This document shows positions 7,339 through 57,464 of a stretch of DNA of 64,000 nucleotides, piece by piece; position 1 is the stretch's first letter; every line of letters begins with the position of its first letter. The DNA comes from Podarcis gaigeae. Lineage: Eukaryota. The notes under the pieces are model-generated. The model saw only the letters and a program-made list of their open reading frames with translations, was not told where the DNA came from and did no database searches. Both the position numbers and the translations under genes were made by a program. The stretch is taken from the NCBI GenBank assembly GCA_964106915.2, contig OZ066921.1. One strand, given 5' to 3'.

Positions 7339-7819
7339 TATATGCCTCTATTTTATGTTTAGTTGCTTTACTATGCTGGCATAACAGTAATATGCTCAAA
7401 GACACTCAGTCTGCATTTGAATGCTTAAGTCCATTCTTTTATTATTGGCAGCTAAACCTTTGCATTTTTTAAAAAAAATGTTCAGAGATATCCGACACTT
7501 TAGTCTATAAAACACTGTATCAAGAAAGATTGGATTCGTTTCAGCCTGTCACTTTAATGAAATGGATCTCATTTCACTTTAATGAAGCTAACCCAAGTTG
7601 AATATTTTGGCATGAAAAACTATTCCCCACACCTCCATGCATGCAAGCGTAAGAAATGAATTGTGGAGATCTTCTTTTATGGAGCTGCTGAGCTAGTCCT
7701 ACCCCTTGTTTTGTTTCTAAGTGATTTTTCAAAAGGTCTGTGCAGGCAACTAAAATATGGAAACAATCAATGCATGGAAAAGGAAGTGGGATAACATTTG
7801 CTTGCCCAGTTCCCAAAAT

Positions 7820-8350
7820 TATCATAGAATCATAGAATTGTAAAGACTGAAGGGACCATGAGTATCATCTATTTTTTTTAATAGATATTTATTAAGGTTT
7901 TAAAAATTATATTCAAAAACAAAACATAACAACAATACAACAATACAAAAAACATAAACAAACAAAAAAACAAGTATAATTTCATTCCCTTATTTTCTTA
8001 TACCTTACTTTCCCGACTTCCCCATACCTCCCCTCTCTGTATTCCAATTTCTATTTTATTACTTCAGCAAATCCTTTCCCTTAATTTCATTTAGTTTTTA
8101 ACCCTTCTTTTCTTACTACTTATCCAATCCAGCTGGAAACCACACAATTTCTAAACCGACGTCATTCTAACATTCGTTAACTTTGCAATATTTCTTGAGA
8201 TAGTCCTTGAATTTCTTCCAATCTTCTTCCGCTGTCTTGTATCATCTAGTCCAACCCCCTGCAATGCAGGAATCTTTTGCCCAACATTGGGCTCACAGAT
8301 ACAACCCTGAGATTTAGTCTCATGCTTTAACAACTGAGTTATCCCAGCTC
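7820..8350 (-). mobile_element. Short element with CR1-type 3' tail (TTCTATGA repeats) and tRNA-like head, interrupted by an L1 fragment
   Basis: ATCATAGAATCATAGAA...AAGGGACC...CATCTA|GTCCAACCCCCTGCAATGCAGG. An empty homologue lies at 55853-55930. Confidence 0.7.
7872..8238 (-). mobile_element. 5'-truncated L1-type LINE 3' end
   Basis: Poly(T) at 7872-7879. Minus strand encodes KTAEEDWKKFKDYLKKYCKVNEC*. Exact 10-bp TSD GTATCATCTA at 7862-7871 and 8239-8248. Confidence 0.85.
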
Positions 8351-8700
8351 AGAATCCAAAATGTTCATCATCAAGACCCTTTCATACCCTCCAGTGTTCC
8401 TCAAATGAAAATAGGGACATACTATTCTACATCAGGAAGCTTCTTCCACATTTGATTGTACTGTATACATATACAATACGTTGTATAGACATATACATCT
8501 GTCACCTTGGGCCTATTACAACCTCTCAGCCTAACATACCTCACAGGATTGTTATGAAGGAAATAATGTGTAATGGAAGGTATTATGTACAACATCTTCA
8601 ACAGATAAATGAAAGGGGGGGTTAGCTGTAAGCTGCCAGGGAAAAAATGTGGGGAATAACAATGACAACAACAGAAACTGTGAGAGTGATCAGGAACTTA

Positions 8701-16664: not shown

Positions 16665-16795
16665 ATATGTGTTGACAAAAATCAGCTGATAATGCCACAA
16701 AAATGTAATCGATATTGTCACAAGATCTGATTTTTATTTTTTTTTTCAAATCAACACAGCACAAAAATCTGACCTGATGGCTTCCGGTTTCCGTC

Positions 16796-17293
16796 ACTGA
16801 ACTGAAAGGGAGTGTGGAGAAACTCCGGAGGAGTTCTCCGAGTAATACAGGGGCTTGGGGGTGTCGCAAAGGCACTGCGCCCCCCCCAGAAAGCTCAAGG
16901 GGGGAAGCCCTTGAGGAAAAGAGCCCCAGCCATGTGGATGCAGCTCCCCATTTTTCCGGGTTTCTTTTGTTAAGGAGCTCGAAGCGGAGAGCCTGCTAGC
17001 ACAAAAGGGGAAACAGCGACCCTGTATTACGAACTGAAAGGGAGTGAAAGGGAGTGAACTGAACTGAAAGGGAGTGTGGAGAAACTCCGGAGGAGTTCTC
17101 CGAGTAATACAGGGGCTTGGGGGTGTCGCAAAGGCACTGCGCCCCCCCAGAAAGCTCAAGGGGGGAAGCCCTTGAGGGAAAGAGCCCCAGCCATGTGGAT
17201 GCAGCTCCCCGTTTTTCCGGGTTTCTTTTGTTAAGGAGCTCGAAGCGGAGAGCCTGCTAGCACAAAAGGGGAAACAGCGACCCTGTATTACGA
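16796..17293 (+). repeat. Tandem duplication of an approximately 237-bp CpG-rich unit at the L1 5' end (period 262 bp)
   Basis: 16796-17032 and 17058-17293 differ at only about 2 positions by eye; the spacer is made of GAAAGGGAGT pieces. Confidence 0.9.
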
Positions 17294-18877
17294 TGCCTCT
17301 GGCTCCCTCTGAAGAATGCGATGAACCTCCTCAACCATAAGAACGGAACCCTTAGTGTGAGTAGTCTTTTTTTATGCCGAAAAATTTAATGTTACACTAA
17401 GAGAACATCGGATGTTAGAAGATTTAATCTGGGAATTTATCTCGATAGAGGACTAAAATGGTGCTGGCTACAAAGTAGCAAGGAGGAGACAGGAAGTTTT
17501 TTTTCTTTCTGCCCGACTGTGTGAGTTACTAAGTAACTGTCTTGGACTTCTAATGTAACAAACGTAAAAATTTGAAACATTCCACAACCCTGGACAGCCA
17601 GCCTCTTTGGAGAGGAGCGGCTTAAATCTAAAATCTAAAAAGAGAGAGTAAATTACGAAAGGCTGCAGAGCAGTTTGAAATGGAGCTTTGCAGATCAGGA
17701 GAGAAGAGCTGCCTATGGAACTCTATGTAGAAGGGCACGGAAAAAAACGGCTCGAGAAAACCGTCGGAAATATTAATAAAAAGAACTCTCCCTAACTTGT
17801 TGGCTATCGTGGACACGCTGGAGGTTTGCTCAAAGCCTCTACGACTGAAACAAAAAACCATACGAAGCTAAAATATATTCCTCCAGCCCACCCTGTCAAA
17901 ACTGTACATATACCATGCTCATAAGTTCGTGATTATCATTTTTTTTCCCTCCCCTGGTCCCCCCCTTCTACCCCATGTTCAGTTATACCATTCATGACAT
18001 TTACATTTTTGTGTTAAGTCAAAAAATAAATTGGTTACTCTATATTTTTTTCCTTCCCCTCTCCTGTCCCCTCTCCCTCCTCCCTCCCCTCCAACTCTGT
18101 TTTACTGTCTGTTTCTCTTTCCTCTTTATTTTAATAACATAACTAACAACTTATTCAACCTACTTTCTACTCACCAATTTTTGGAGGAACTCTAAATCAT
18201 CGGAATCATAACATTTAATTTAGGACGATCCTTTATCTCCTGAAAACACAATCAATGGGATAACAGCTAACATCTGAGGCACCCAGTGTGGTTTCCTGGA
18301 TATAACTACACCTCACCTAAGACCGAATAAAGAGACGCATTGGAATTTGGAACTGGAAATTCCAGAGTGCAATAAAACTTCGCACAGCCCCCAGAGTGCA
18401 ATAAAACTTTGCACAGCTCCCGCGAAATGGACTAAATAAATAAGTGGCTGAAAACTACAGGATTATACAAGTGGCTGAAACTACTGAATATATAGAGACT
18501 ATACAACTTCTTCTTTCCCCCCCCTGGAATATAACAGAAAGACACCGATTTTTGTTTATGCTTTTTTATTTTTTGCTCCTCTCCCCTCTGTCTCTGAAAC
18601 AATTATACTAATATACTAATACAAAGCAAATATTTAACAACAAAAAGTTTCTGGAAATATAAGTGGGACTGGTTAATATTGTGTGAATAATTGATGTAAA
18701 TAAACTGAAATAAGGTATTGAAAGCCCCCTTGATACTAAGAAAACAAAAGAGGATAGGAGGTCAGGAGGGCAAGAGTTTTAAACTAATACAGTTTAAGGT
18801 GTTTATGGTGTGGAAAACATAAAAAGGGGGGGAAATAGATTGTGAGCCCTTTAGGGGAGAGAAATATAAACCACAGG

Positions 18878-19905
18878 ATGTCGGGGGGAAATGGTAAAAA
18901 AGTTGGAGGGACCCCGGGAGAAAGAAAAGCATCTCGACAAGAGGAAATTAAAGACTTAGACTTTTTGTGGTTTAAGATTAAAGAGGAATTTAAGCAAAGG
19001 GAAACACACATGGAAAACAAACTAGGAGAAATACAGGAGCAAATTGATAGGAAAATAGAAAGTGCTGTAGGCGAACTCTCGAAAAAGATACAAGATTTGA
19101 CAGTTAAATCAAAAATAATTGAAGACTCCAATAAAAAAACACAAAAAGATTTGAGGGACCAAAAGAAGGAAACAGAAAAGCTGAAGGAAGAAGTAAAAAA
19201 ATTAAATAAAACACAAGACCAATTATTGGACAATTTAGCTATGACAGAAATGCGTCAAAAACATCTTAATTTAAAATTTAAAGGGATCGCTGAAGAAGCA
19301 AATGAAAACATAAGAGAAAAATAGTTCAGGAACTTGCAAAATGGTTGGAGATGAAAGAAGAACAAATAGCATATACAATAGAGAACGCGTTTAGAATAAG
19401 AGGAAAACCACAACAATTTAAGTCCAAAAGAATCCCCGGAGACTGTTTAGTAATATTCAACTCCATTGAAATGAAAAATATAATATTAAGAAATAGTTTT
19501 AAAAGAAAGTTGATGATCTGAGACCGTCCAATCACCATCTTTAAAGAAATTCCAATTAGGATCCTGCGCAAAAGGGAAGGATACAGACAGTTAACAAGTG
19601 TTTTGAAGAGGAACGCAATACAATACAAATGGGAATTCCCAGAGGGGGTTTCCTTCTATCATAAAAATAAAAAATTCAAGTTGACAGATATTCATGAAGC
19701 AGAAAAGTTCATGAGAAGATACGAAAAAGACCTGGGTAAAGAAGAAGTAGGACAGCGAGGAGGCGACTTGGTCGCAGGGGGGAGTGGAGGGGGTGGAGTC
19801 GAGGAGGGGGGGGAGTCAGAGGAGGAAATGGAGGATTTTAGATCGGAGGAAGAGGAGGAGGGAGAAGACAGAGACTTCAACAGAAAGGGAAGCACCAGAC
19901 TTTAA
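18878..19905 (+). pseudogene. L1 ORF1p (coiled coil, RRM-like, CTD, acidic tail), disrupted
   Basis: K/E-rich coiled coil in ORF 18842-19324, frameshift at about 19320, AFRIRGK/PGDCLVIF, stop at about 19519, IFKEIP..YKWEFPEGVSF. Confidence 0.85.
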
Positions 19906-19945
19906 ATCAGAAAGTAGGATAAAGTGTACTTAGTCATAACTTGAA

Positions 19946-21719
19946 ATGACCATTAAGTTTATATCGTGGAATGTGAATGGCTTTAACGATAAGTCCAAGA
20001 GGAATAAATTTGAAAAAATTATAAAGAAAAAAAATCTATGTCATTTGTTGCCAAGAAACTCATGTTGCCAAAAAACACAAGCATATTTTAATAAATAAGA
20101 AGCTGGGAATAGAATTTATCAACTCAGACTCAAAAAAGAAAAGAGGGGTAGTAATTAATGTGAAAGAAAAATTAGAACCCAAGCAAATATGTAAGGATGA
20201 GGAAGGAAGAATCCTAGGAGTACAAATTAAATACCAGGGAGAAAAAATAAATGTGGTAACAGTTTATGCCCCAAACTCAAATAGACTGGAGTTTTTTTAA
20301 AAAATGGAGCAATTCTTATTAGACTTAGATAATAACAAATTGGTCTTACTTGGAGATTTAAATGGAGTACCGACACCAGAACTAGATAGAAGTGTAAGAA
20401 AAAAGAAGTTAAACCAAGGGAAATTACCAAAATCCTTCAATGACCTTGAGGAAAATTTAGATCTAATAGATATATGGAGATTTAAAGATTGGCAGAGACT
20501 ACTTTCTAAATTTATTTGGCAAGGAAAAAGACCAAGGATTAAATTCAAATTGCTCATGGATCAAAAAGACAGGGGGGGATTTGCGGTCCCAAATTTACAG
20601 TTATATTATGAAGCAGCATGCCTTTGTTGGGTAAAAGAATGGATTGTCATTAAAAATAAAGATTTGTTAGATCTAGAGGGTTTTAACTTAAGATTTGGAT
20701 GGCATGACTATCTGTGGCGGGATAAAGGAAAGAAACATAAAGATTTTTCTAACCATATTATTAGAGGGCCACTGTTAGAAGTGTGGGAAAGGAATAAAAA
20801 ATTATTGGAACAGAAAACTCCCTGGTGGTTATCACCAATCGATATACTGACAAAAAAGAAAATAAACACTGAAGGGGAAAGATGGACATATGAAGATCTA
20901 TTAGTTAGAAATGAATCCGGGTGGAGAATCAGACCATATGAAGAAATAAAAAATAAGTTGACTGGCTGGATTCAATATCACCAAATTAACTCCATGTGGA
21001 CGGAAGATAAAAAGATTGGGATAAATGAGAAGAAATCTAGATTTCAGATTGAAATAATAGAAGGAAGAACAAAATTACTATCAAAAATGTATAACCAGTT
21101 ACTTGAGTGGGACACCAAAGATGAGGAAGTGAAGGAGGTGATGGTGACAGTGGACTTGGGTTATAATATAGAGTTTGACAAATGGAAGGCTTTATGGTGT
21201 AAAGGTATGAACTTCACGGCATGTACAACACTCAACGAGAACATGTATAAGATGATGTACAGATGGTACATGACGCCGGTAAAATTGGATAAAATTTATA
21301 AAACAGGTGATAAAATGTGTTGGAAATGCAAGAGTAAGGAGGGCGACTTTATACATATATGGTGGTCATGTGAGACACTTAAAAAATTTTGGGAATCTAT
21401 CTATAATGAATTTTAAAAAGTCCTCAAATACACCTTTAGCAAAAAACCTGAAGCTTTCCTCCTGGGGATAATTGGCGAAGAAATCAAAAAGGAAGATAAA
21501 ACATTTTTTCAATACACAACAGTGGCTGCCAGAACCCTCATAGCACAGTATTGGAAAACGTCTAAAATCCCAACGATAATAGAGTGGCAATCTAAACTAT
21601 TTGACTATTTAGAACTGGCAAAATTGACATAGAAAATAAGAAATCAAAAAAGTACAAAATTTAATAATGAATGGGATAAATTTAAGTTATATATGGAAAC
21701 AGAAATAAAAGGAAAATAA
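19946..21719 (+). pseudogene. L1 ORF2p remnant: APE endonuclease fused directly to the C-terminal/zinc-knuckle region, RT absent
   Basis: MTIKFISWNVNG, QETH, VYAPN, GDLN, LIDIWR (endonuclease), followed at once by DWQRLLSKFIWQGKRPRI..GGFAVPN..YY and CWKC-x8-H-x3/4-C. No QG/ADD RT motifs. Confidence 0.9.
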
Positions 21720-21769
21720 AAATGTTGATAAAAAACAAATATATATTTGAAAAATTCACAGTAGGTATG

Positions 21770-22529
21770 TGTCAGGACTGCCGCTAGGTCCCAGCTCACA
21801 GAGGACCAACGCCCAGTGGATATTATATACAAAAGTCTTTATTGAAGTTTAGTTTCCATTTCCAAGCTCTGGGCGCGCAGGCCCACGTCTTAACGCTAGA
21901 CCGGCTAAGTCCCCTCTGACTCACTGCTCCACCCACACCAGTTTAAGATTCTAGCCCGGCTCCACCTCTTGCGCTGCTCTTTCCTGCGTTGGGTCCTTCT
22001 GCCCTCTGGGGTTCCCTCCTTCCTGGACTCCTCTGACGCGGAGCCTCCTGAGTCTTGCCCCTCCCTCCGGCGGGCTTTAGGACCTGGCTCCCTTCCCGGG
22101 CTCCCCGCTGTGCCGCGCTCCTGTACATTTGAACTTGGCGCGCGCGCCCAGCCGGTGACTTTCCTTCTGACCGTTTCCCCGCTTCCTGATGTGGGTGTAG
22201 CCAAACCTGACTCCTCTCCTCCCTCTGGTGGTGAGGACACTGGTCCCGACTCCTGGGACTCCCCCTCCCCACTGCGCTCTGGTGGAGACGCTGGTCCTGA
22301 TCTCCAGCTGCTGCTCAGGGACTCCCCGCTGGCCCCTCCCTCTTGAGGTTTCTCCCTTGGAATCTCCCTTGCTCTGGCCACCGGTGCTCCCTTCTGTGAG
22401 TCCTCCGATTCGCTAGAGAGGCTTGTGGAATAACTCTGGCCACTGTCACTGCCTGCGCCCCCCTCGTACTCCTCCTCCTCACTCTCCATTTGCTCCCCCT
22501 CCTGTGTCTCTCCTTCTGAAACCCTGACA
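21770..22529 (-). mobile_element. Solo LTR (760 bp) inserted in the L1 3' UTR
   Basis: TGTCAGG...CCTGACA terminal inverted repeats, exact 5-bp TSD GTATG (21765-21769 and 22530-22534), minus-strand AATAAA at 21838-21843, CpG-rich (young). Confidence 0.92.
21905..22489 (-). CDS. Hypothetical LTR-encoded 194-aa low-complexity protein (acidic N-terminus, Arg-rich C-terminus)
   Basis: ATG-initiated, uninterrupted, in LTR sense orientation, ending upstream of the poly(A) signal. No recognisable domain. Confidence 0.3.
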   Translation of the reverse strand: MESEEEEYEGGAGSDSGQSYSTSLSSESEDSQKGAPVARAREIPREKPQEGGASGESLSSSWRSGPASPPERSGEGESQESGPVSSPPEGGEESGLATPTSGSGETVRRKVTGWARAPSSNVQERGTAGSPGREPGPKARRREGQDSGGSASEESRKEGTPEGRRTQRRKEQRKRWSRARILNWCGWSSESEGT

Positions 22530-22912
22530 GTATGAGATAACGCTTACTACGTAAAATTTGCTTGAAAAATGAGACACTGCAGATAAAAAATATGTTAACT
22601 TTATTCCGAAATCGAGATAAAGGGAAGTCGATGAGTGTTTGTCAATGTAAGTTGAGTTGTCTATGTTTTTATGTATTACATGTTTCGTTTTTCTTTTTCT
22701 TTTCTTTTTTCCTTTTTTCTTGGCTGTGTAAGTATGTTTGTGATATGTATGATATGTATGTTAAAAAGCAATAAAAAATATTTTTTTAAAAAAACCTGAC
22801 CTGATGGAGAGAGACGGATGCCATTTCCTGATTCAGCAGTGCAAAAATACCCTAAATCAGTTGTAGAAATCTAGACAACATTCAAAAAGTAAAAAATTGT
22901 TGCCCAGTGTTA

Positions 22913-26230: not shown

Positions 26231-26544
26231 TTCTTGTGGATAACATATGCTCATCCTTTTTACGGTGTTTCTTCTCCTCTCTCCTGTCGAAACATACTGC
26301 TTCTCTTAAACCCACTCTTTAACCTTACTTTTCCCTAGCTGATGAAAACTTAATCTAAAAATAGGGTAAGTCTATGTTAAAAAATACTTAACCTCGCACA
26401 GTAACAGATTTAAGCTACAAGTTTGACCCCAATGTTAGAAGGATTTTGACTGCATTGGTACTATGCTACACATTTATGGGCATTTGACTTAATAAGACTG
26501 ACTGGAATAATGCTTTTCACAAAATCAGCTCAGTAACTCTGCAA

Positions 26545-26810
26545 ACAATACAAGGCACCCCACAGGTTGCTTTTTAAATCATTTTTCGCAGAGAACAGGA
26601 CTTCCAACATAAAGAGCTAGTTACTTTTCTTTTGGACCCAGCTCAAAGCTGGAAAAAGTTAGACAATTTGCAAATTCATAACTGGAGACAAAAAGAATGG
26701 AAAATGGCATGCATGGAAAAATTCACAAAAGAGGTGAAAACATCAAAAGACAACTATCAGATAACAACTTTACTGGTACCCTTTTATAACACATATGAAC
26801 AAACATAATC
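26545..26810 (+). mobile_element. Decayed L1 ORF2 C-terminal remnant
   Basis: Translates to AQSWKKLDNLQIHNWRQKEWKMACMEK...WYPFITHM, typical of L1 ORF2 ends. Confidence 0.55.
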
Positions 26811-28597: not shown

Positions 28598-30087
28598 TTT
28601 TCTCTATCTCAAACTGATTTATAATAAAGTGAAAACAAGTGTTGGTCTCTCTGTCTTCTGCTCTACCAATCCCAGTAAGCTCCAGTCACACACCTCTCCT
28701 GTCTAACACACAAACATACATAAGCAAATCAATTTGTGTTCTGTATTAGAATGGATAAAGAAAAAAAAAAACATGTTCCCAAACCAACTGGATATCTCAG
28801 CTGGTTACAACATGGTCTGACAATGCCAAAAGTTGTAGGTTTGCATTGCGGTGGGTTGGACTGGATGATGCTCTCAGGGTTCCTTCCATCTCTACAATTC
28901 TCTGATTCTGTGAAACAAGCATTCACTCTCTAAACTCAATTCTCTTCTGTCATTGGTATTGTTTGACTTCATTATGAACTGCTGGGCTTTTGTGTAATAA
29001 AAAGCTTTTTTGGCCAGAATTAATATACGTAATATTTATCCTTTTTTTCCCCTTGACCTCCGTAGCTTTGAAATCAATTTCAAAATGACTAAGCAGCTCT
29101 GTTCATTAAATGTATGCTTCCTTTCTGCATTTAAAAATAAGACTAATCCATAATTACTTTTATTATTTTCATCTACAGTAGAATAAAGATAATTTTTACA
29201 AACCCAAAGAAAATATAATCAAACGAAACACTTGTAATTCCTAACAAAGGAACAAATGTGATTATTATTTTTTTGCTTTTCAGCACTGCTGATTCAGTTG
29301 AAAAATCCTGCTTTGGAGGGGGTTGGACTAGATGGCCCTTGAGATCCCTTCAAAGTTCTTTGATTCTCTGAAATTAATTAAGTGAACTTGGGAAAATATG
29401 AAACAAAGATGGTGCACCACCATCATCTCATTGAACTTCTTTCTCAGTCAAAGCAAGTGCTAACAGCAGCATCAGCCATATCAAGGCACATTGGGTTGTA
29501 ATCTTCTGCCCAACAACATTGGGAAAAGAAGCAGCTGCCTTATATCAAATCAAACCATTGGCCCTTCTAGCTCAGCATTGTCTTTTCTGACTGGCAGCCA
29601 GGGATTGAACTTGGAACCTTCAGCATGCAAAGCAGATGCTGTATTATTAAGCCATGGCCCTTCCCTTCTCACAAGGCTGCTCATAAGCTGTAGCGCAGGG
29701 ATGGTTGATGAAAACCAACACACTTCCTAAGGTCCAAGTAAATACAACATTGTGCCACAGTGCACATTTTCCCCCCTTGTATAAAGTAGCAGCCATAAGC
29801 CTGGAGGTGACCGTCGCATGGATCACTGTGGCCAGATCAGGGCAGGAAAGGTGGGGAAGGATAGCTGCTGCTGCTTTCAGACTGCAAATGATATGTACTG
29901 TAATTTATTATGTCACCCCCCACACACATTTGCATTGCATATTCTTTGCATTGAAAAGAATGGGGTGGAATGATGTAATGGCAATATAATTTATGTCATT
30001 AAGATTGCATTTAGTGAAACAAATAGGGTAATTTTGGGTGGATGATGAACTGCAGAAGAAAGAAACCACACTGAATTTGATAAATAC

Positions 30088-49450: not shown

Positions 49451-51180
49451 AACCAAAACTTCTCCATTTTAGACCTGTTGAATTTTCTGATTCTATCATA
49501 TCCTTCACGTATGGACAGAATCTCCCCCACTCACCTCCTCCTATTTAACCTCCAACATTGCTTTTAGGTGAGATTCTTTGACAAATCTGCTTCAGTGATT
49601 TGCACAGGAGAGCAGTCCTCTTGCTCAGAAAAAAAAAATGCAGAGGCAATTTCTTCTATGAAATAAAGAGTTGCTGATAACACCTTGCAGGACCTCATCA
49701 GTTGTTTTGCCTAATTATCATAGAATTATTAAATCGGTTGTCAGCAGCTAAAACATTGCTTTTCTTCTAGTATGGATTTTCCCCTGAAGTGCACTGAATT
49801 AGCTTTCTTGTTCTCTAATACAAAAGAACACAAAATCTATACTCTAATTTATGAGCAATGGATAACAATAATAAGACTTACTTGTTATTTATAAAGAGGC
49901 ATTGTGTCTCTAGGCCAAAAAGTTCTTTTGCAGCTGTAGTCATTTTACCCCCAGAGATGTCAATTCAAGATTGCACTTAAGCATAGTTTATTAGTCCAAT
50001 TCCCTACCTAAACGTCAGAGAATTTTCATGTGAAAGAGCACACCCACGGCATGGCAATATTACCATGTGTTTCCTAACTCTTTGTTGATGCTCACAATGA
50101 CAGATATTCAGCCCTCCAACCAACGCTTCCGATTCATTCATTCCTGGACATAATGGGAGTCTTCAGCAACATCAAAGACTTAATGGTATTATCCTTGTGA
50201 TGCCTTTTATCACACTGCTGAGAATGACCTAATTAATTGTACTGCCTAAGAGAGTTTGAATTTGGCTAGTTTTACTAGAATCTCAGCATGCAGAACAGCA
50301 AGACAGAGAAATGTGGCTTAGCCCCACTAAATGTGGGCCAATTTACATCGGTGTGGCGGATCTCCTACCTTTCTAATATAGTAGATAAACATTCCCATAC
50401 AAATGCTTCTTTATGCCTTTGATTTTCTTGATGACCTTAATATGTCTTGCTGCCATAATGTAAGGAAGTACCCAGCATAAATGCATCTATTAGTTCTGTA
50501 GTATCATTCTCAGAGGTATATACATTTAAATATGTTTTAATAGTGTAAACATTTATTGCGCTTAACTGCACAGACCATCAAGCTCCTGAATAGTTTGGAT
50601 CCAACTCAATATAAAGTTAGGTACATTTATTTCTCTCTGAAATTTAGTTTTTCACACCAATGGGGCTGACATCTAATGTTATGGGGACTAATGTTATGTT
50701 TGGTTGGATCTTGGATTGTCAGTAAGTAGCTCATAAGTCTCAAGGTGGGGCTAGATATTATTCTATATCCTAAAGAATCATCTGAAAACTGGTTTCAGAA
50801 AACCACAGAGGACAGAGATCACTGCATAAACTCAAGCCCAGGTCCTGAAGCAAGGCTGGGTTCAAATTAGAAGGGATTGCCTCTCACTGGGAAATGTACA
50901 GCATAAGGGGAGGTGGTATCTGTTTTAAATTGATTTATACATGCAGTTTGGTTGTTCCAATCCAAAGACATTTGCCTACAACCAACTACCTCTTGCATCA
51001 AGCCATTTGTGCACAACAGTGAAAAAAACCCCACCAACTAATTATACACATTTTTTATTCAAAAATACACATTGCATATTATACCTATAACATGCATAAA
51101 AGCCTAAAGTTCTGTGTAGTATATTTCTGCAACATAATTTTGTAAGTATTAATCATATTTGTATTCATGAATATGCAATA

Positions 51181-51422
51181 CAGTGGTACCTCAGGTTAAG
51201 TACTTAATTCATTCTGGAGGTCCGTACTTAACCTGAAACTGTTCTTAACCTGAAGCACCACTTTACCTAATGGGGCCTCCTGCTGCTGCTGCACCGTCAG
51301 AGCACGATTTCTGTTCTCATCCTGAAGCAAAGTTCTTAACCTGAAGCACTATTTCTGGGATAGTGGAGTCTGTAACCTGAAGCGTATGTAACCTGAAACA
51401 TATGTAACCTGAGGTACCACTG
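51181..51422. mobile_element. Tigger-like MITE, copy 3 (opposite orientation)
   Basis: TA|CAGTGGTACCTCAGGTTA...TAACCTGAGGTACCACTG|TA. Confidence 0.9.
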
Positions 51423-51590
51423 TATTATAATATCTGTTTATGTGTTGGCTACTTTAGGAAATCTGGAGTGCATCAATGTATAACGTGGTTGGAGATGTGA
51501 GAACTGTGAGAACAAGATGCTGGACTAGATGGGCCTTGCACTCATAGAAACATAAAGGTGTAGAGTTGGAAGGGGCCCAAGGACCATCTA

Positions 51591-52300
51591 TTTTTTTAAA
51601 AAAAAAATATTTTTATTAATTTTAAGAAATACAGAAAAAAGAATAAAGGATAGTTATAAGAAAATAGAATAGAAGAATAACAAATTTCCATGTTCTTTTT
51701 CCATCCAATCTAAAGGACTTCCCCACATCCTCCAAACCCTGCGTTCTCTGTCATATAAAACATCAGCAATTTGTTAACTTATTTCAAAACTTATTGTATC
51801 TTCTATTTTATCATGTTCCCTGATTTCAATTTTACTATAACCCAATTCTTGTATGCTTTGTATTAAACACAATAAAGTTATTTCATTATTTTACCTCTAA
51901 ATTCTTGTGTCTTAATTTTCATTTCATTAACTTACATTTGCTGAAGCTAGAGTTTCCTGAAAGGTGCATTTTTTTAACATTCATACAGCTTATAGTGTTT
52001 TTTCAAATAGTCCTTAAACTTTTTCCAGTCCTCCTCAATTGTTTCTTCTCCCAAGTCTCGAATTCTGCCAGTCATTTCAGCCAATTCCATATAGTCCATC
52101 AACTGTGATTGCCATTCCTCCAGCGTGGGTAAATCTTGTGTCTTCCAATATTTTGCAATCAGGATCCTTGCTGCTGTGGTAGCGTACATAAAAAAGGTTC
52201 TGTCCTTCTTAAGCACTCTCTGGTCTACCATGCCCAGAAGGAAGGCCTCTGGTTTCTTAGGTAAGGTAAATCTCAGTACCTTTTTTAGTTCATTATGGAT
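51591..52300 (-). mobile_element. 5'-truncated L1-type LINE 3' end (ORF2 C-terminus plus 3' UTR)
   Basis: ELKKVLRFTLPKKPEAFLLG..YATTAARILIAKYWK..EEDWKKFKDYLKKHYKLYEC*. T-rich tail at 51591. TSD-like G(A/T)CCATCTA at 51582-51590 and 52304-52312. Confidence 0.88.
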
Positions 52301-54539
52301 CTAGTCCATCTAGTCCAGGATCCTGTTCTCATAGTGGTCAACCAGATTGGGGTTGTTCCTGTGAGATTTGTGGTTTGAGTTCACTGTGAAAAGAAAAATT
52401 GCAGTTGAATATGAATATGCATATGTGACTGAAGAAGACAGATGCTCCATCTTAAATCTATGTGACACATTGCAGCCAGGTACGCAGGCTTCAGAAGGGA
52501 AGAAGGTTCTTCTTTGTGTTCACATTTCCAGCTCCAGCTGCAGTGATTTTCAGTAAAAGAAAAGGGTACTTAGAAGCAGGAAACTTAACACTGTCCTCTT
52601 CTATCGAGTCCTGATTTAGGGCAGATTTTTAGTATTGCGTACAACAGATGAGTTAACATTTCTGTGATAAGAGTATCAATAAGAGAAAGGAAACCTTTGG
52701 GCTTCTAGTTGATCCAGCTGTTGGACTACAGTGTCCATCAACCCTGACAAGTGGCTAAAGAGCGAGGATAGGTAATATAACTGTGAAGGAGGTTTCATGC
52801 GGTGAATCTCAATCCAAAAATTAATGAAAGGGACCATCTTTCTATAAATTTATCTTAATGTTAGTTCTTAGCCAGTATATCAGGGTGGGTGATTTGTTTG
52901 TTTTCCATCTAATTACTGTAGATCTGTGTTCCTCACTTCAGACTAAGATACAGTGTCTGAGAATTTAGAGTTTAAATGCAATTTAATAGCTCCATCCAGT
53001 GTTTGCTAATGGCATATTCTTATCAACAAATGTAACATGAGGAAGGGTAGGGGTGGGAAAATGAACTTGACCATGAAAAGAAGCAGCTTCATATATTTAG
53101 TTGCTGGGAGGTGCAGGGGACTCAAATGAAATGAGGTATCTATTGATCTGACTGCATACAAAGTCACACAGCAGAGATAGAGAATTTAATCATGGCACCA
53201 TTCTTTGGAATACGATTAAGCTCCAAATGCTTAGAAGTATCGATCTCCCTACAATATCCATATTTAAGCTGTACCGGCAAACATATAATTCCCTCTGATT
53301 TACAATCCCCTATCACATTTGCTTCAATGCACCCTCTATTCTCTAGTCATCGTGTTCAGTGCTATAAACCCTTTGCAAGGGTGTTTTGGGGTTTCTTGCA
53401 TACTGAATTTTGTGCTTTCCAAGTCAAAACACAGCTGGCATCTTTAAAATAATTTTATTTGGCAAATCATCAACTTCTGATCATTGAAAAGTAAATAAAA
53501 TGAGCATTAACCTAATAAGACCAATAAAACAACCAAGTAATCAAATTCATATTAAGAGATGGGAATGATTCAGAATTCTGTTTACAGAGTTACCATGGCT
53601 GAAAAGACATAATTTTCACATACTAGGGGACTGGTCTCTTTCTAAGGCAGGGTAGGGGGATGGGAACCCTTTGAGCCAGAAGGCCATACTTACTTTATTG
53701 CCAATCTTCTGAGGCTGGATGCCAGGGGTAGGAAAGGTGAAATTTAAGCGGAGCAATGAATGTGCAGCACATGATATTCTGGTCATACAAATGTTAGGAG
53801 GCTTCTAAGTGCAAACTCATATGAATCTCTTGAGGAGGGTGCCAAGCAGATGGCCCCTCATTGACAAATGGAGTGTTCTGAGAGCAAAATGGAGGCTACA
53901 GCAACATCCCCCCCCCTTAGGCTTCTACCATGGGCTGTGTCCCAAGCTTAACCATGCCAGATATGATTATGCACAGCTTTGTACCAGACTGGACATGAGA
54001 ACATAAGCTCTCCTGTGTCAGGCCAAAGGCTCATCTAGTCCAATATCCTACTTTCAAAGTGGTCCTCCAGATGCTTATTGGAAGCCCATAAGCAGGATGT
54101 GAGTGTAATGGCACTCTCCTCACTTGGGACTTCCAGCAACTGGTTTTCAGACAAGGGATGGTTGGATCCATCCATCAATTTCAGTTCTCTCAGTTTCTCA
54201 TTTTTGCAATCATATATACTGGTCTCCACAATTTTGCTGCAATTCCCAGTTTTTTTAAAAAATTAAAAGTGCTCATGAAAGTATGTCAGCATTTTATTGC
54301 AAATTCATACTAATAAACCCATTTTTGTATGCATTTTTGCCTAATATACATTTTGTTTAAAGCATCTTTCCATACTGTAATAAGTCCTTGGATGTCATTT
54401 GCACTAATGCCTGCATTTTTAGGCACACTTTAGCGAGCACTTTTATATGCATTACTTGGCTGGGGAATTGCACTACAAAATTCAGAGATGTATGAATTTT
54501 GAAGGATGACTGTGTTTTGGTTTCGTATATTGCCTTATA

Positions 54540-54765: not shown

Positions 54766-57464
54766 TAATGTGTAAATATGGAAGGTTCATTGTTACAGGT
54801 GAACATAATCAAATTTCCCCCTCATTCCTAGTTCAGCATCATTTCCCCTCTGACAGTGGAGGTAGAATACAGCCATTGTAGCTCATATCCACTGGTAGCC
54901 TTTTCCTCCATGAATTTGTCTATACTCCATTTGAAGCAATCCAAGTTAGTAGCCATCACTTACTACATATTGTGGAAGTGAATTCTGTAGATTAACCACA
55001 GCAGAGGTACTTTATTTTGTCTGTCCTTAATCTTCCAACAACTGATTCTTTACAATTCAGCCTATGATCAATGAAGTAGTCCATCTTCCTGCCACTCGGG
55101 GGCTCTAACTATTCACTTTGGAGTCAGCTTTACTGTTTTCATTTTTAAGGGAGGGGTATTTGAATTCCCATGAATGGAAACAAAAATCTCAACACAAAAT
55201 AAATTGCACCCATCAGCTTTAGTCTGTCTCCAGAAGTTCCCATTCTGTTAAAGATGAATAAGAGCAAATGAAGTCATGATGAACTTTCTCAAATAGTGGA
55301 ATTCTGTATAGTTGAGACTATGCTTGTGTGTGTGTGTGGAATATGAGCTTTAATTATCCAAGTATCAAATTTTAAATATCTGATTTGACCAATTATGAAT
55401 ATGCATTACAAGCTGTGATACTGCAAAGTTCCAATTAGTTTGTGTTTGAAATTCAAATTCTTTCAAAATAATTTTTACATTCTGTACTAAATAATCATAA
55501 CAGAATTATCAAAGCCATCAATAGCAAATGTTAAAGGTGTTGCCAATGAATGGGAACATCAAATTATCAATGTGACATACTTGTCACCTGAAACCAACTA
55601 GCTTTACATGGGCCTCTGAGTTATCAAAGTTATTTTAAAAAATCAAATGTTATATTAAACAACAGATTAACATATCAAACAAATTTTAATACAAGAAAAT
55701 AACCATCTCTCCTCCACAAGCATGACCCACATCTAATTTAAATCATTTCTTTAAAGAAAATGAAATTATACTCAAGAAACGAAGCATACAAACTGATCTT
55801 ATGCATGCATTCAGGAGCAAATACCACAGGCTTCAATTTGGCTTCTACCCTATAGAATCATAGAATAACAGAACAATAGAGTTGGAAGAGACCCTTAGGG
55901 TTACCTAGTCCAACTCCCTGCAATGCAACACCTCAAGTTAATCATGCATAGAATTGAACGCTATGTGCATAAGGTGTCTTGGACCATACTTGGATACAAC
56001 AGTAGAGACAGGCCCATGGCCAAATGTGTCCTCCAAAACTTTTTGTCTGGCTCTCAGGATTCTCCCTATGCCACATGCCCTTGCTGCAGCAGCTTCCCAG
56101 CATTTTAGACACAGAGTCTTTCCCACTTATAACTGGAGGTGCTAGGAATTCAACATGGGACCTTCCACATGCAAAATAGATGCTATTCAACTGAGCCAAA
56201 GCCCTTCGCCATAAGGATGTTGAATTTCTCAATAGATCTGAACCTGGAACTTTCTGCTTGCAAAGCAGATCCTCTTTAAGATGGGTCCATCCCTACACAG
56301 TCACCTGAACCAGTGCACAGTTTCAGCATGGGACTTTCAGCATCCAATATACAGTATACCATTAGCCTGTAAACCTTCTCTATATTTCTTCAAACTAATA
56401 AAATTAGACCACATTATTCTCATCAGTGCTTTTTTTCTAGAAAAAGGAGTGCTGGAACTCACCATGAACACCTCCCTCTTTCTCTCAGAATGGCAATGGC
56501 GCCCACCTGAGAGGTGCCAGAACTGAATTCCAGTGAGTTCCAGCTGAAAAGGCTGCTGGAAAATGCACACCTTCTACATAGACCAAGTGCAGTATGTCTT
56601 GCTGAATCTGAGACTTGGTTACTGGATGTGTCTGTCATCTGTTATGACAGATGGCAATTGGATGTGACACCTTGCACAATAGGCCATCATTCAACACAAT
56701 TTAAGAAGGGAATTTCACACAAAATGTAGGCGTTCTAAGAAGCCATTTGTTCAAATGGGAGCTGCCATGAGTTCTTGATCTAGTGAATTGTACTGCCCAG
56801 GCCACCGTGTGCTTGCCACGCACAGCAGCTCTTTTCTGGACTTCAGAGTGGAGGTTATTTTCTGCCTTTGGGGCTGTGGATGAAAAGTATGCCTTGATAT
56901 AATAACCTAGGCAGCTCTCCTAAAATCCATGGTGATTGATCCTCTGAGAGATCAATACTAGTTCAACAGAACTGATGAAACTTCCAGACAGCACCTGAGC
57001 TGAGATGACTCCATTGAAATATTATTTAGAGCTGAGCTACACTCAATATTCTCTACTTTTGCTCTTTGGATGGAAACTGAAGATGCATGCTCAATCATTT
57101 GCCTCCCCCCCCCCCAAAGCATTTAGATTGTGTAGACATTCACTTAAAAAGAAAAAATCTTGTTCAGTTTCATTCTTCTCCTGGCTCCTGGATGCCTTTT
57201 CCTCCTTCCTGGATTGAATACTCAGCTGATCCCACCCAGATAGGGATCACAGAAAATGTGGTGATGCTCTAACACTGTGTAGCGCTGTTTAGCAGGAATG
57301 GATGCATCAGGGATGGGGAGCCCTTGAACATCAAGATGCTGCTATACTCCAGCTCCCATCATCACTGACCATTGGGCTCTGGTGGCTAGGGCTGATGAGA
57401 GTTGGAGTCCAGCAAAATTTAGAGGGCCACAGGTTAGCCACCCCTGTCCTACCTGATAGCTCAA

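Follow-up and report, generated by a model that had tools for sequence, protein, structure and literature searches.

Two independent L1 insertions at the same bond of CR1-type repeat tails in Podarcis gaigeae point to a preferred landing spot

Sequence-specific integration among the relatives of L1 is known mainly from the Tx1 group, and L1 proper is viewed as integrating at T-rich sites with weak specificity, by reading shape. LINEs with an APE-type endonuclease that are specific for rDNA or repeats, such as R1, are strictly specific, and the specificity of their endonuclease has been demonstrated. Within the Tx1 clade, several target-specific LINEs insert into other transposons, including Xenopus Tx1L in Tx1D, crocodilian Tx1-Mar in Mariner-N4_AMi and others in LTR or Harbinger elements, a family being considered target-specific when more than 20% of its flanks lie in one target (Kojima 2015, PMC4494074). 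The canonical nick of the human L1 endonuclease is 5'-TTTTT/AA-3'; this enzyme recognises the shape of DNA and makes few contacts with the bases (PMC8565326). A limited literature search, which is not proof of absence, found no description of an L1 proper that prefers CR1 tails. Here we describe two L1 fragments, known as event 1 and event 2, within 64,000 nucleotides of Podarcis gaigeae (assembly GCA_964106915.2, contig OZ066921.1; hereafter the window). The two cases point to a preferred landing spot, whereas a dedicated site-specific lineage is not provable from two events.

Both fragments are 5'-truncated, end in an A-tail and are flanked by target site duplications (TSDs), the hallmarks of L1 insertion (Table 1). 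Event 1 retains the last 23 codons of ORF2, ending in KTAEEDWKKFKDYLKKYCKVNEC and a stop codon, followed by a 3' UTR of about 290 nt and an A8 tail that is read directly as T8 at positions 7872-7879 of the plus strand. In event 2 the last 108 codons of ORF2 are intact and end in ...EEDWKKFKDYLKKHYKLYEC and a stop codon, followed by a 3' UTR of about 380 nt and an A7 tail. The TSD of event 1 is perfect over 10 bp and ends in CATCTA, as the initial annotation had stated, and that of event 2 is only 7 bp long. Event 2 also carries five extra bases at its 5' junction, a feature absent from the initial annotation, and we infer that these are untemplated or microhomology filler.

Table 1. Positions of the two insertions, their target repeats, the uninterrupted tails and the control L1 in the window
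Feature	Position	Strand	Basis
Event 1, L1 fragment, 5'-truncated, 367 bp including A8	7872-8238	minus	
Event 1, TSD copy adjoining the A-tail, GTATCATCTA	7862-7871		read directly
Event 1, TSD copy at the L1 5' junction, GTATCATCTA	8239-8248		identical to 7862-7871
Event 1, target SINE, 3' part: CR1-type tail with ...GGTCCC... and ATTCTATG-type repeat end	7815-7861	minus	colinear with uninterrupted tails after removal of the insert
Event 1, target SINE, 5' part: head tRNA-like by eye, body, end ...GGGGGTTGGAC	8249-8375	minus	window comparison
Event 2, L1 fragment, 5'-truncated, 710 bp including A7	51591-52300	minus	
Event 2, TSD copy adjoining the A-tail, CCATCTA	51584-51590		read directly
Event 2, TSD copy at the 5' junction, CCATCTA	52306-52312		read directly
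Event 2, five extra bases at the 5' junction, making the local repeat TCTAGTCCA/TCTAGTCCA	52301-52305	minus	read directly
Event 2, target, 3' part: CR1-type tail (...CCCCTTCCAACTCTACA...TTTCTATGAG)	51541-51583	minus	window comparison
Event 2, target, upstream part: related to an abundant repeat carrying CATCTAGTCCAGCATCCTGTTCTCACAGTGGCCAACC	52313-52370	minus	window comparison
Uninterrupted CR1-type tail, variant TGGATG	28842-28913	+	window comparison
Uninterrupted CR1-type tail, exact GGACTAGATG	29306-29394	+	window comparison
Uninterrupted CR1-type tail, variant TAGGTA	55857-55927	-	window comparison
Control: L1 of another clade, close to full length, ORF2 tail 52% identical	16781-22794	+	

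In both events the plus-strand poly(T) begins straight after CATCTA, and GTCC follows the second copy of the TSD. Read in the sense of the inserts, the A-tail of each fragment abuts the TAGATG of a CR1-type 3' tail, and fragment and tail have the same orientation. The pre-insertion sites were rebuilt from the window coordinates by removing the insert together with one TSD copy, and were then compared within the window. Both rebuilt sites align gap-free across the junction with the three uninterrupted tails, which had been reported as empty versions of the motif and proved to be so. This colinearity places both nicks at 5'-CATCTA/GTCC-3', and direct reading of the junctions thus bears out the earlier observation that both poly(T) tails start at the same phosphodiester of a CR1-type tail in the same orientation. 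In the CR1 sense strand the entry point is GGAC^TAGATG in both events, the second-strand cut lying 7 or 10 bp further on. The nick site has neither a T-tract nor an A after the cut, so that the T-rich/A (TTTT/A-like) feature of L1 is missing from both, again as first noted. No microhomology to the target was seen at the L1 3' end. Scans of the window found no A-tail joined to TAGATG beyond the two events, no further interrupted half-tails and no other insertion at the same bond.

The target tail, which we take to be CR1-type from the known features of CR1 tails, contains a short hairpin (GGTTGGAC...GGTCCCTTCCAAC) followed by a 3'-terminal repeat of the ATTCTRTG type, according to alignments and folds. 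When the nicked strand of either target was folded, the bond fell where the loop of a small GGAC...GTCC hairpin meets its 3' arm; this hairpin is weak, at about -5 kcal/mol over 80 nt, with stems of only 4-6 bp. Five CR1-type tails with a ATTCTATG-type end are present in the window, and two of them are occupied. The initial annotation had placed both insertions in the same short repeat, and this holds for the CR1-type tail and fails for the sequence upstream of it, which belongs to different families. Without the insert and one TSD copy, the event 1 site is an uninterrupted short SINE whose restored 3' end runs from ...GGGGGTTGGAC directly into TAGATGATAC, then GGTCCC and finally ATTCTATGATTCTATG. 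Neither ARAGORN nor Rfam called a tRNA in the head of this SINE. The event 2 site without its insert is a repeat other than that of event 1, ending in the same kind of tail.

The surroundings of event 2 contain further repeats. Two inverted copies of a CATCTAGTCCAGCATC...-type repeat flank its target tail and make a long imperfect palindrome at 51490-52350. A very high-copy repeat lies at 51179-51424, with sharp boundaries at 51178/51179 and 51424, and dominated the contigs from four of four lizard runs; it is presumably a SINE common to these species.

The two fragments are independent L1-type insertions by target-primed reverse transcription (TPRT), and not copies of one composite, because they differ in truncation point, 3' UTR and target repeat. 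One keeps 23 ORF2 codons and the other 108. Their 3' UTRs cannot be aligned save for the last ~30 nt, which share a terminal AATAAA..TAT(T)nA7-8, and no further copy of either 3' UTR was found in the window. The earlier description of two L1-type fragments with a common ORF2 end, different truncations and diverged 3' UTRs is therefore accurate. The ORF2 tails also fall in different subfamilies: the C-terminus of event 2 is identical to P0162 at 98 of 108 residues, and the closest proteins to event 1 are P0172 and P0217 (18 of 23 residues each) and P0163 (18 of 21). The target repeats have the tail alone in common, and the TSD of event 1 reproduces the variant sequence of its own target copy, TAGATGATAC being private to event 1. 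Amplification of a composite, template switching and 3'-transduction were considered as sources of the pair and were rejected because of the TSDs and the unlike junctions.

Oriented CATCTAGTCC sites occur seven times in the 62.9 kb of the pre-insertion window, or about 5.6e-5 per oriented position, and at this frequency two random landings at the same bond are very unlikely. Shorter parts of the motif are more common, with 111 oriented occurrences of TCTAG, 35 of ATCTAG, 12 of ATCTAGT and 7 of the full 10-mer in the window. The chance that both events would fall in the 10-mer is 0.004 if TCTAG is what is recognised, 0.04 if it is ATCTAG and 0.34 if it is ATCTAGT. Since both events are in the 10-mer, these counts suggest recognition of about 6-7 bp or more, and two events do not tell whether a generic 7-mer or the CR1 tail itself is recognised.

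We named the group to which both fragments belong the EC clade, after the ORF2 end ...EEDWKKFKDYLQKHYKLYEC (...KLYEC). Queries with the 108-residue tail, by word search and by representative search, returned mostly fragments. A longer query, P0135 (715 residues), returned many ORF2 proteins of Podarcis muralis with 1236-1246 residues and 74-89% identity, and the C-terminal pattern of the group is ...EEDWKKFK.YL.K..K..EC. Full-length relatives, including P0159, P0160 and others, carry Pfam domains PF03372 and PF00078, that is, an endonuclease and a reverse transcriptase (RT). P0159 aligns from residue 4 to 1234 with residues 9-1251 of human L1 ORF2p (E = 6e-182). The Cys motif of the group is CX2CX8HX4C (CWKC-8-H-4-C), the form reported for non-mammalian L1 by Boissinot and Sookdeo (PMC5381506). 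The L1 architecture of APE-type endonuclease, RT and C-terminal Cys motif is thus found in the full-length relatives, the fragments in the window consisting of the ORF2 tail only. From these protein comparisons the EC clade looks like L1 proper; its Cys motif of the L1 type and its colinearity with human L1 speak against a placement in Tx1, but are not a tree. The clade is a large and abundant Podarcis L1 group, apparently active, and many of its copies in P. muralis have an intact ORF2.

Summed Logan-contig depth over the 3' UTR of event 2 (51603-51937) was about 4e5-9e5 in organism A against about 1e2-2e4 in three other species; the single-copy depth of organism A was also several-fold higher than that of the other three species' runs, and summed contig depth is not copy number. 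This excess may reflect a species-specific burst of the event 2 subfamily. The Logan contigs end at repeats and at the T/A run (51586-51617); none of them spanned either junction, and they yielded neither an empty orthologous site nor any paralogue flank. In metagenomes, neither a protein query nor a junction pattern gave a match.

We also aligned 17 endonuclease domains of the EC group and, for comparison, 15 of other L1s of Podarcis and Anolis. Positions aligned to the human catalytic residues are conserved and match those of the other lizard L1s. The loop of the beta-B5/B6 hairpin has the same length as in other lizard L1s and retains the His by which the human enzyme touches the minor groove (PMC8565326). 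No clade-specific change in the catalytic residues or in the length of this loop was therefore found in the alignment. This lack of any sign of re-targeting is weak evidence, because the L1 endonuclease reads shape.

Other L1 copies were compared with the two events. The TSD of the control L1 (16763-16780 and 22790-22807) is 18 bp long, with one mismatch, and begins in an A-run, unlike the 7- and 10-bp TSDs of the two events; its site shows the T-rich/A feature of an ordinary L1. It includes an ORF1-like region, the start of an endonuclease (…ISWNVNGFN…) and the C-terminal part of ORF2. Within its 3' UTR lies a TG...CA element of about 760 bp (21770-22529) that looks like a solo LTR and is bordered on each side by the 5-bp duplication GTATG (21765-22534). 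Elsewhere, a weak tblastn match (30%) to an L1 ORF2 tail at 26503-26760 on the plus strand, in which no clear tail or duplication was seen, is probably an old degraded L1 3' end.

Flanks of further EC-clade copies were read from proteins. In P0172, a UniRef protein of Podarcis muralis from the event 1 subfamily, the first 130-140 residues are a frame-shifted RT that we take to be BovB from its conserved motifs, running straight into L1 ORF2 near reference residue 419. The join contains no residues that TAGATG could encode. This arrangement implies an L1 nested in BovB, whose target would probably be an A-rich site lying some 18-20 nt upstream of the join. The upstream flanks of P0207 and P0037 do not resemble a CR1 tail either. 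Assuming unspliced gene models, at least one EC-group copy (P0172), and probably as many as three, would thus lie outside the motif, and the flanks at the motif are both of the two junctions in the window and none of the three inferred from proteins (P0172, P0207 and P0037). None of the 271 proteins retrieved has a translated CR1-tail flank. In three truncated proteins, P0273 (MS/LEIW), P0272 (M/DAKE) and P0162 (M/VEK), a Met that is absent from the reference ORF2 (P0160) stands exactly at the truncation point, marked here by the slash. We followed this as a lead and rejected it, as it amounts to no more than chance or a single mutation, at a roughly estimated 5% per truncated copy.

The explanation that we prefer, tentatively, is that the L1 machinery of the EC clade favours the CR1-tail bond as a non-canonical integration site, though not to the exclusion of ordinary A-rich ones. 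In both of these independent TPRT events by one abundant wall-lizard L1 group, the strand that primes the cDNA was nicked at 5'-CATCTA/GTCC-3' (GGAC^TAGATG in the CR1 sense), where the loop of the tail hairpin meets its 3' arm. Judging from the two events, the nick would be made by the EC-group L1 endonuclease itself, the choice depending on at least 6-7 bp around ATCTAGT through their sequence or shape, and the site would recur because CR1 tails are so common. In its favour, the control L1 differs in both site and TSD, and a non-exclusive preference fits P0172, P0207 and P0037. Against it are the number of events, the ordinary endonuclease, the poor pairing of a ...CATCTA primer with poly(A) and the weakness of the hairpin. 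Rather improbable, in our view, is a stronger version of this preference, in which a lacertid sub-lineage of true L1, not Tx1, has evolved a strong preference for GGAC^TAGATG and uses the 3' hairpin of CR1 or of CR1-mobilised SINEs as a landing pad. The target itself could instead be responsible, if the hairpin of a CR1 tail is nicked or distorted at its loop/stem junction during replication or by another nuclease, and any L1 RNP, or a structure-specific L1 endonuclease, uses the 3' OH. The use of the same loop/3'-arm junction in both targets, the lack of special features in the EC-clade endonuclease and the shape-reading of the human enzyme with few base contacts (PMC8565326) are consistent with such an origin, as is the rapid cleavage by L1 endonuclease near DNA ends and at mismatches reported in 2025 (PMC12809410). 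However, the TSDs and A-tails of both events are clean, as is usual in endonuclease-dependent TPRT, the hairpin has stems of only 4-6 bp, the single non-EC L1 of the window used a site of another kind and no other insertion occupies the same bond of a tail in the window; we consider a structural or lesion-based origin unlikely.

The initial annotation had favoured a dedicated sequence-specific LINE lineage, working like Tx1 elements, for which the CR1-tail motif is a regular safe harbour. The two EC-clade 3' junctions in the window are both at the motif and in one orientation, and transposon-targeting Tx1 families exist in crocodilians (PMC4494074). A TAG/ATG target in one frame would also produce the non-native Met of P0273, P0272 and P0162, with which chance or mutation is also compatible. 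The Tx1-like part of the proposal is weakened by the colinearity with human L1 ORF2p, the CX2CX8HX4C motif and the ordinary endonuclease, and the variable TSD length (7 and 10 bp) also speaks against the proposal. Strict safe-harbour specificity is unlikely, given that P0172 passes from BovB RT into L1 without TAGATG-encoded residues, that the flanks of P0207 and P0037 are unlike a CR1 tail, that translated CR1-tail flanks are missing from all 271 proteins and that the group is a large active L1 group and not a small specialised family. Taken as a whole, a dedicated lineage is quite improbable. Coincidence, meaning two ordinary L1 insertions at the same base of an abundant repeat, is favoured by how common CR1-type tails are (seven exact motif sites in 63 kb), by the small number of events and by the reading of many windows, which selects rare coincidences. 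Under uniform insertion, however, the second landing at a homologous oriented site has a probability of about 5.6e-5, lower still for a site so far from the T-rich sites normal for L1, and the common orientation, the same L1 clade and the unusually short TSDs in both events make coincidence improbable as well. Finally, the pair could derive from a composite of L1 fragment and CR1 tail amplified whole, which the initial annotation had named among the results that would overturn its claim, or from a template-switch chimera formed during CR1 or SINE retrotransposition. L1 and tail are indeed co-oriented, and both tails end in a CR1-type repeat. Such an origin is nevertheless disfavoured and extremely improbable: the truncations (23 and 108 codons), the 3' UTRs, the tails and the upstream repeat bodies are all unlike, the 5' side of each insert is the rest of the same repeat with a TSD of its own variant sequence, and no microhomology backs a double template switch.

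If the site is a real hotspot of an active amniote L1 at a position free of T-tracts, then L1 target choice can shift without obvious remodelling of the endonuclease, and these lizards offer a natural system for asking what sets that choice. If it is a minor secondary site only, the two events are an ordinary pair of nested insertions. In comparison with known systems, the locus resembles R1-type LINEs in the precise nick position within a repeated and conserved target, known here from two junctions. As with Tx1-clade LINEs, an APE-type LINE has entered another transposon more than once, each time at the same position and in the same orientation. Unlike the Tx1-clade elements, the EC clade is colinear with L1 proper, is represented by two events and has other copies that apparently lie off the motif, and its target is the tail of another LINE/SINE system. 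Overall, the two insertions share with canonical L1 the 5' truncation, the A-tail, the TSDs and the ORF2 architecture of endonuclease, RT and Cys motif, and differ from it in the CATCTA/GTCC site and in TSDs of 7 and 10 bp compared with the 18 bp of the control L1.
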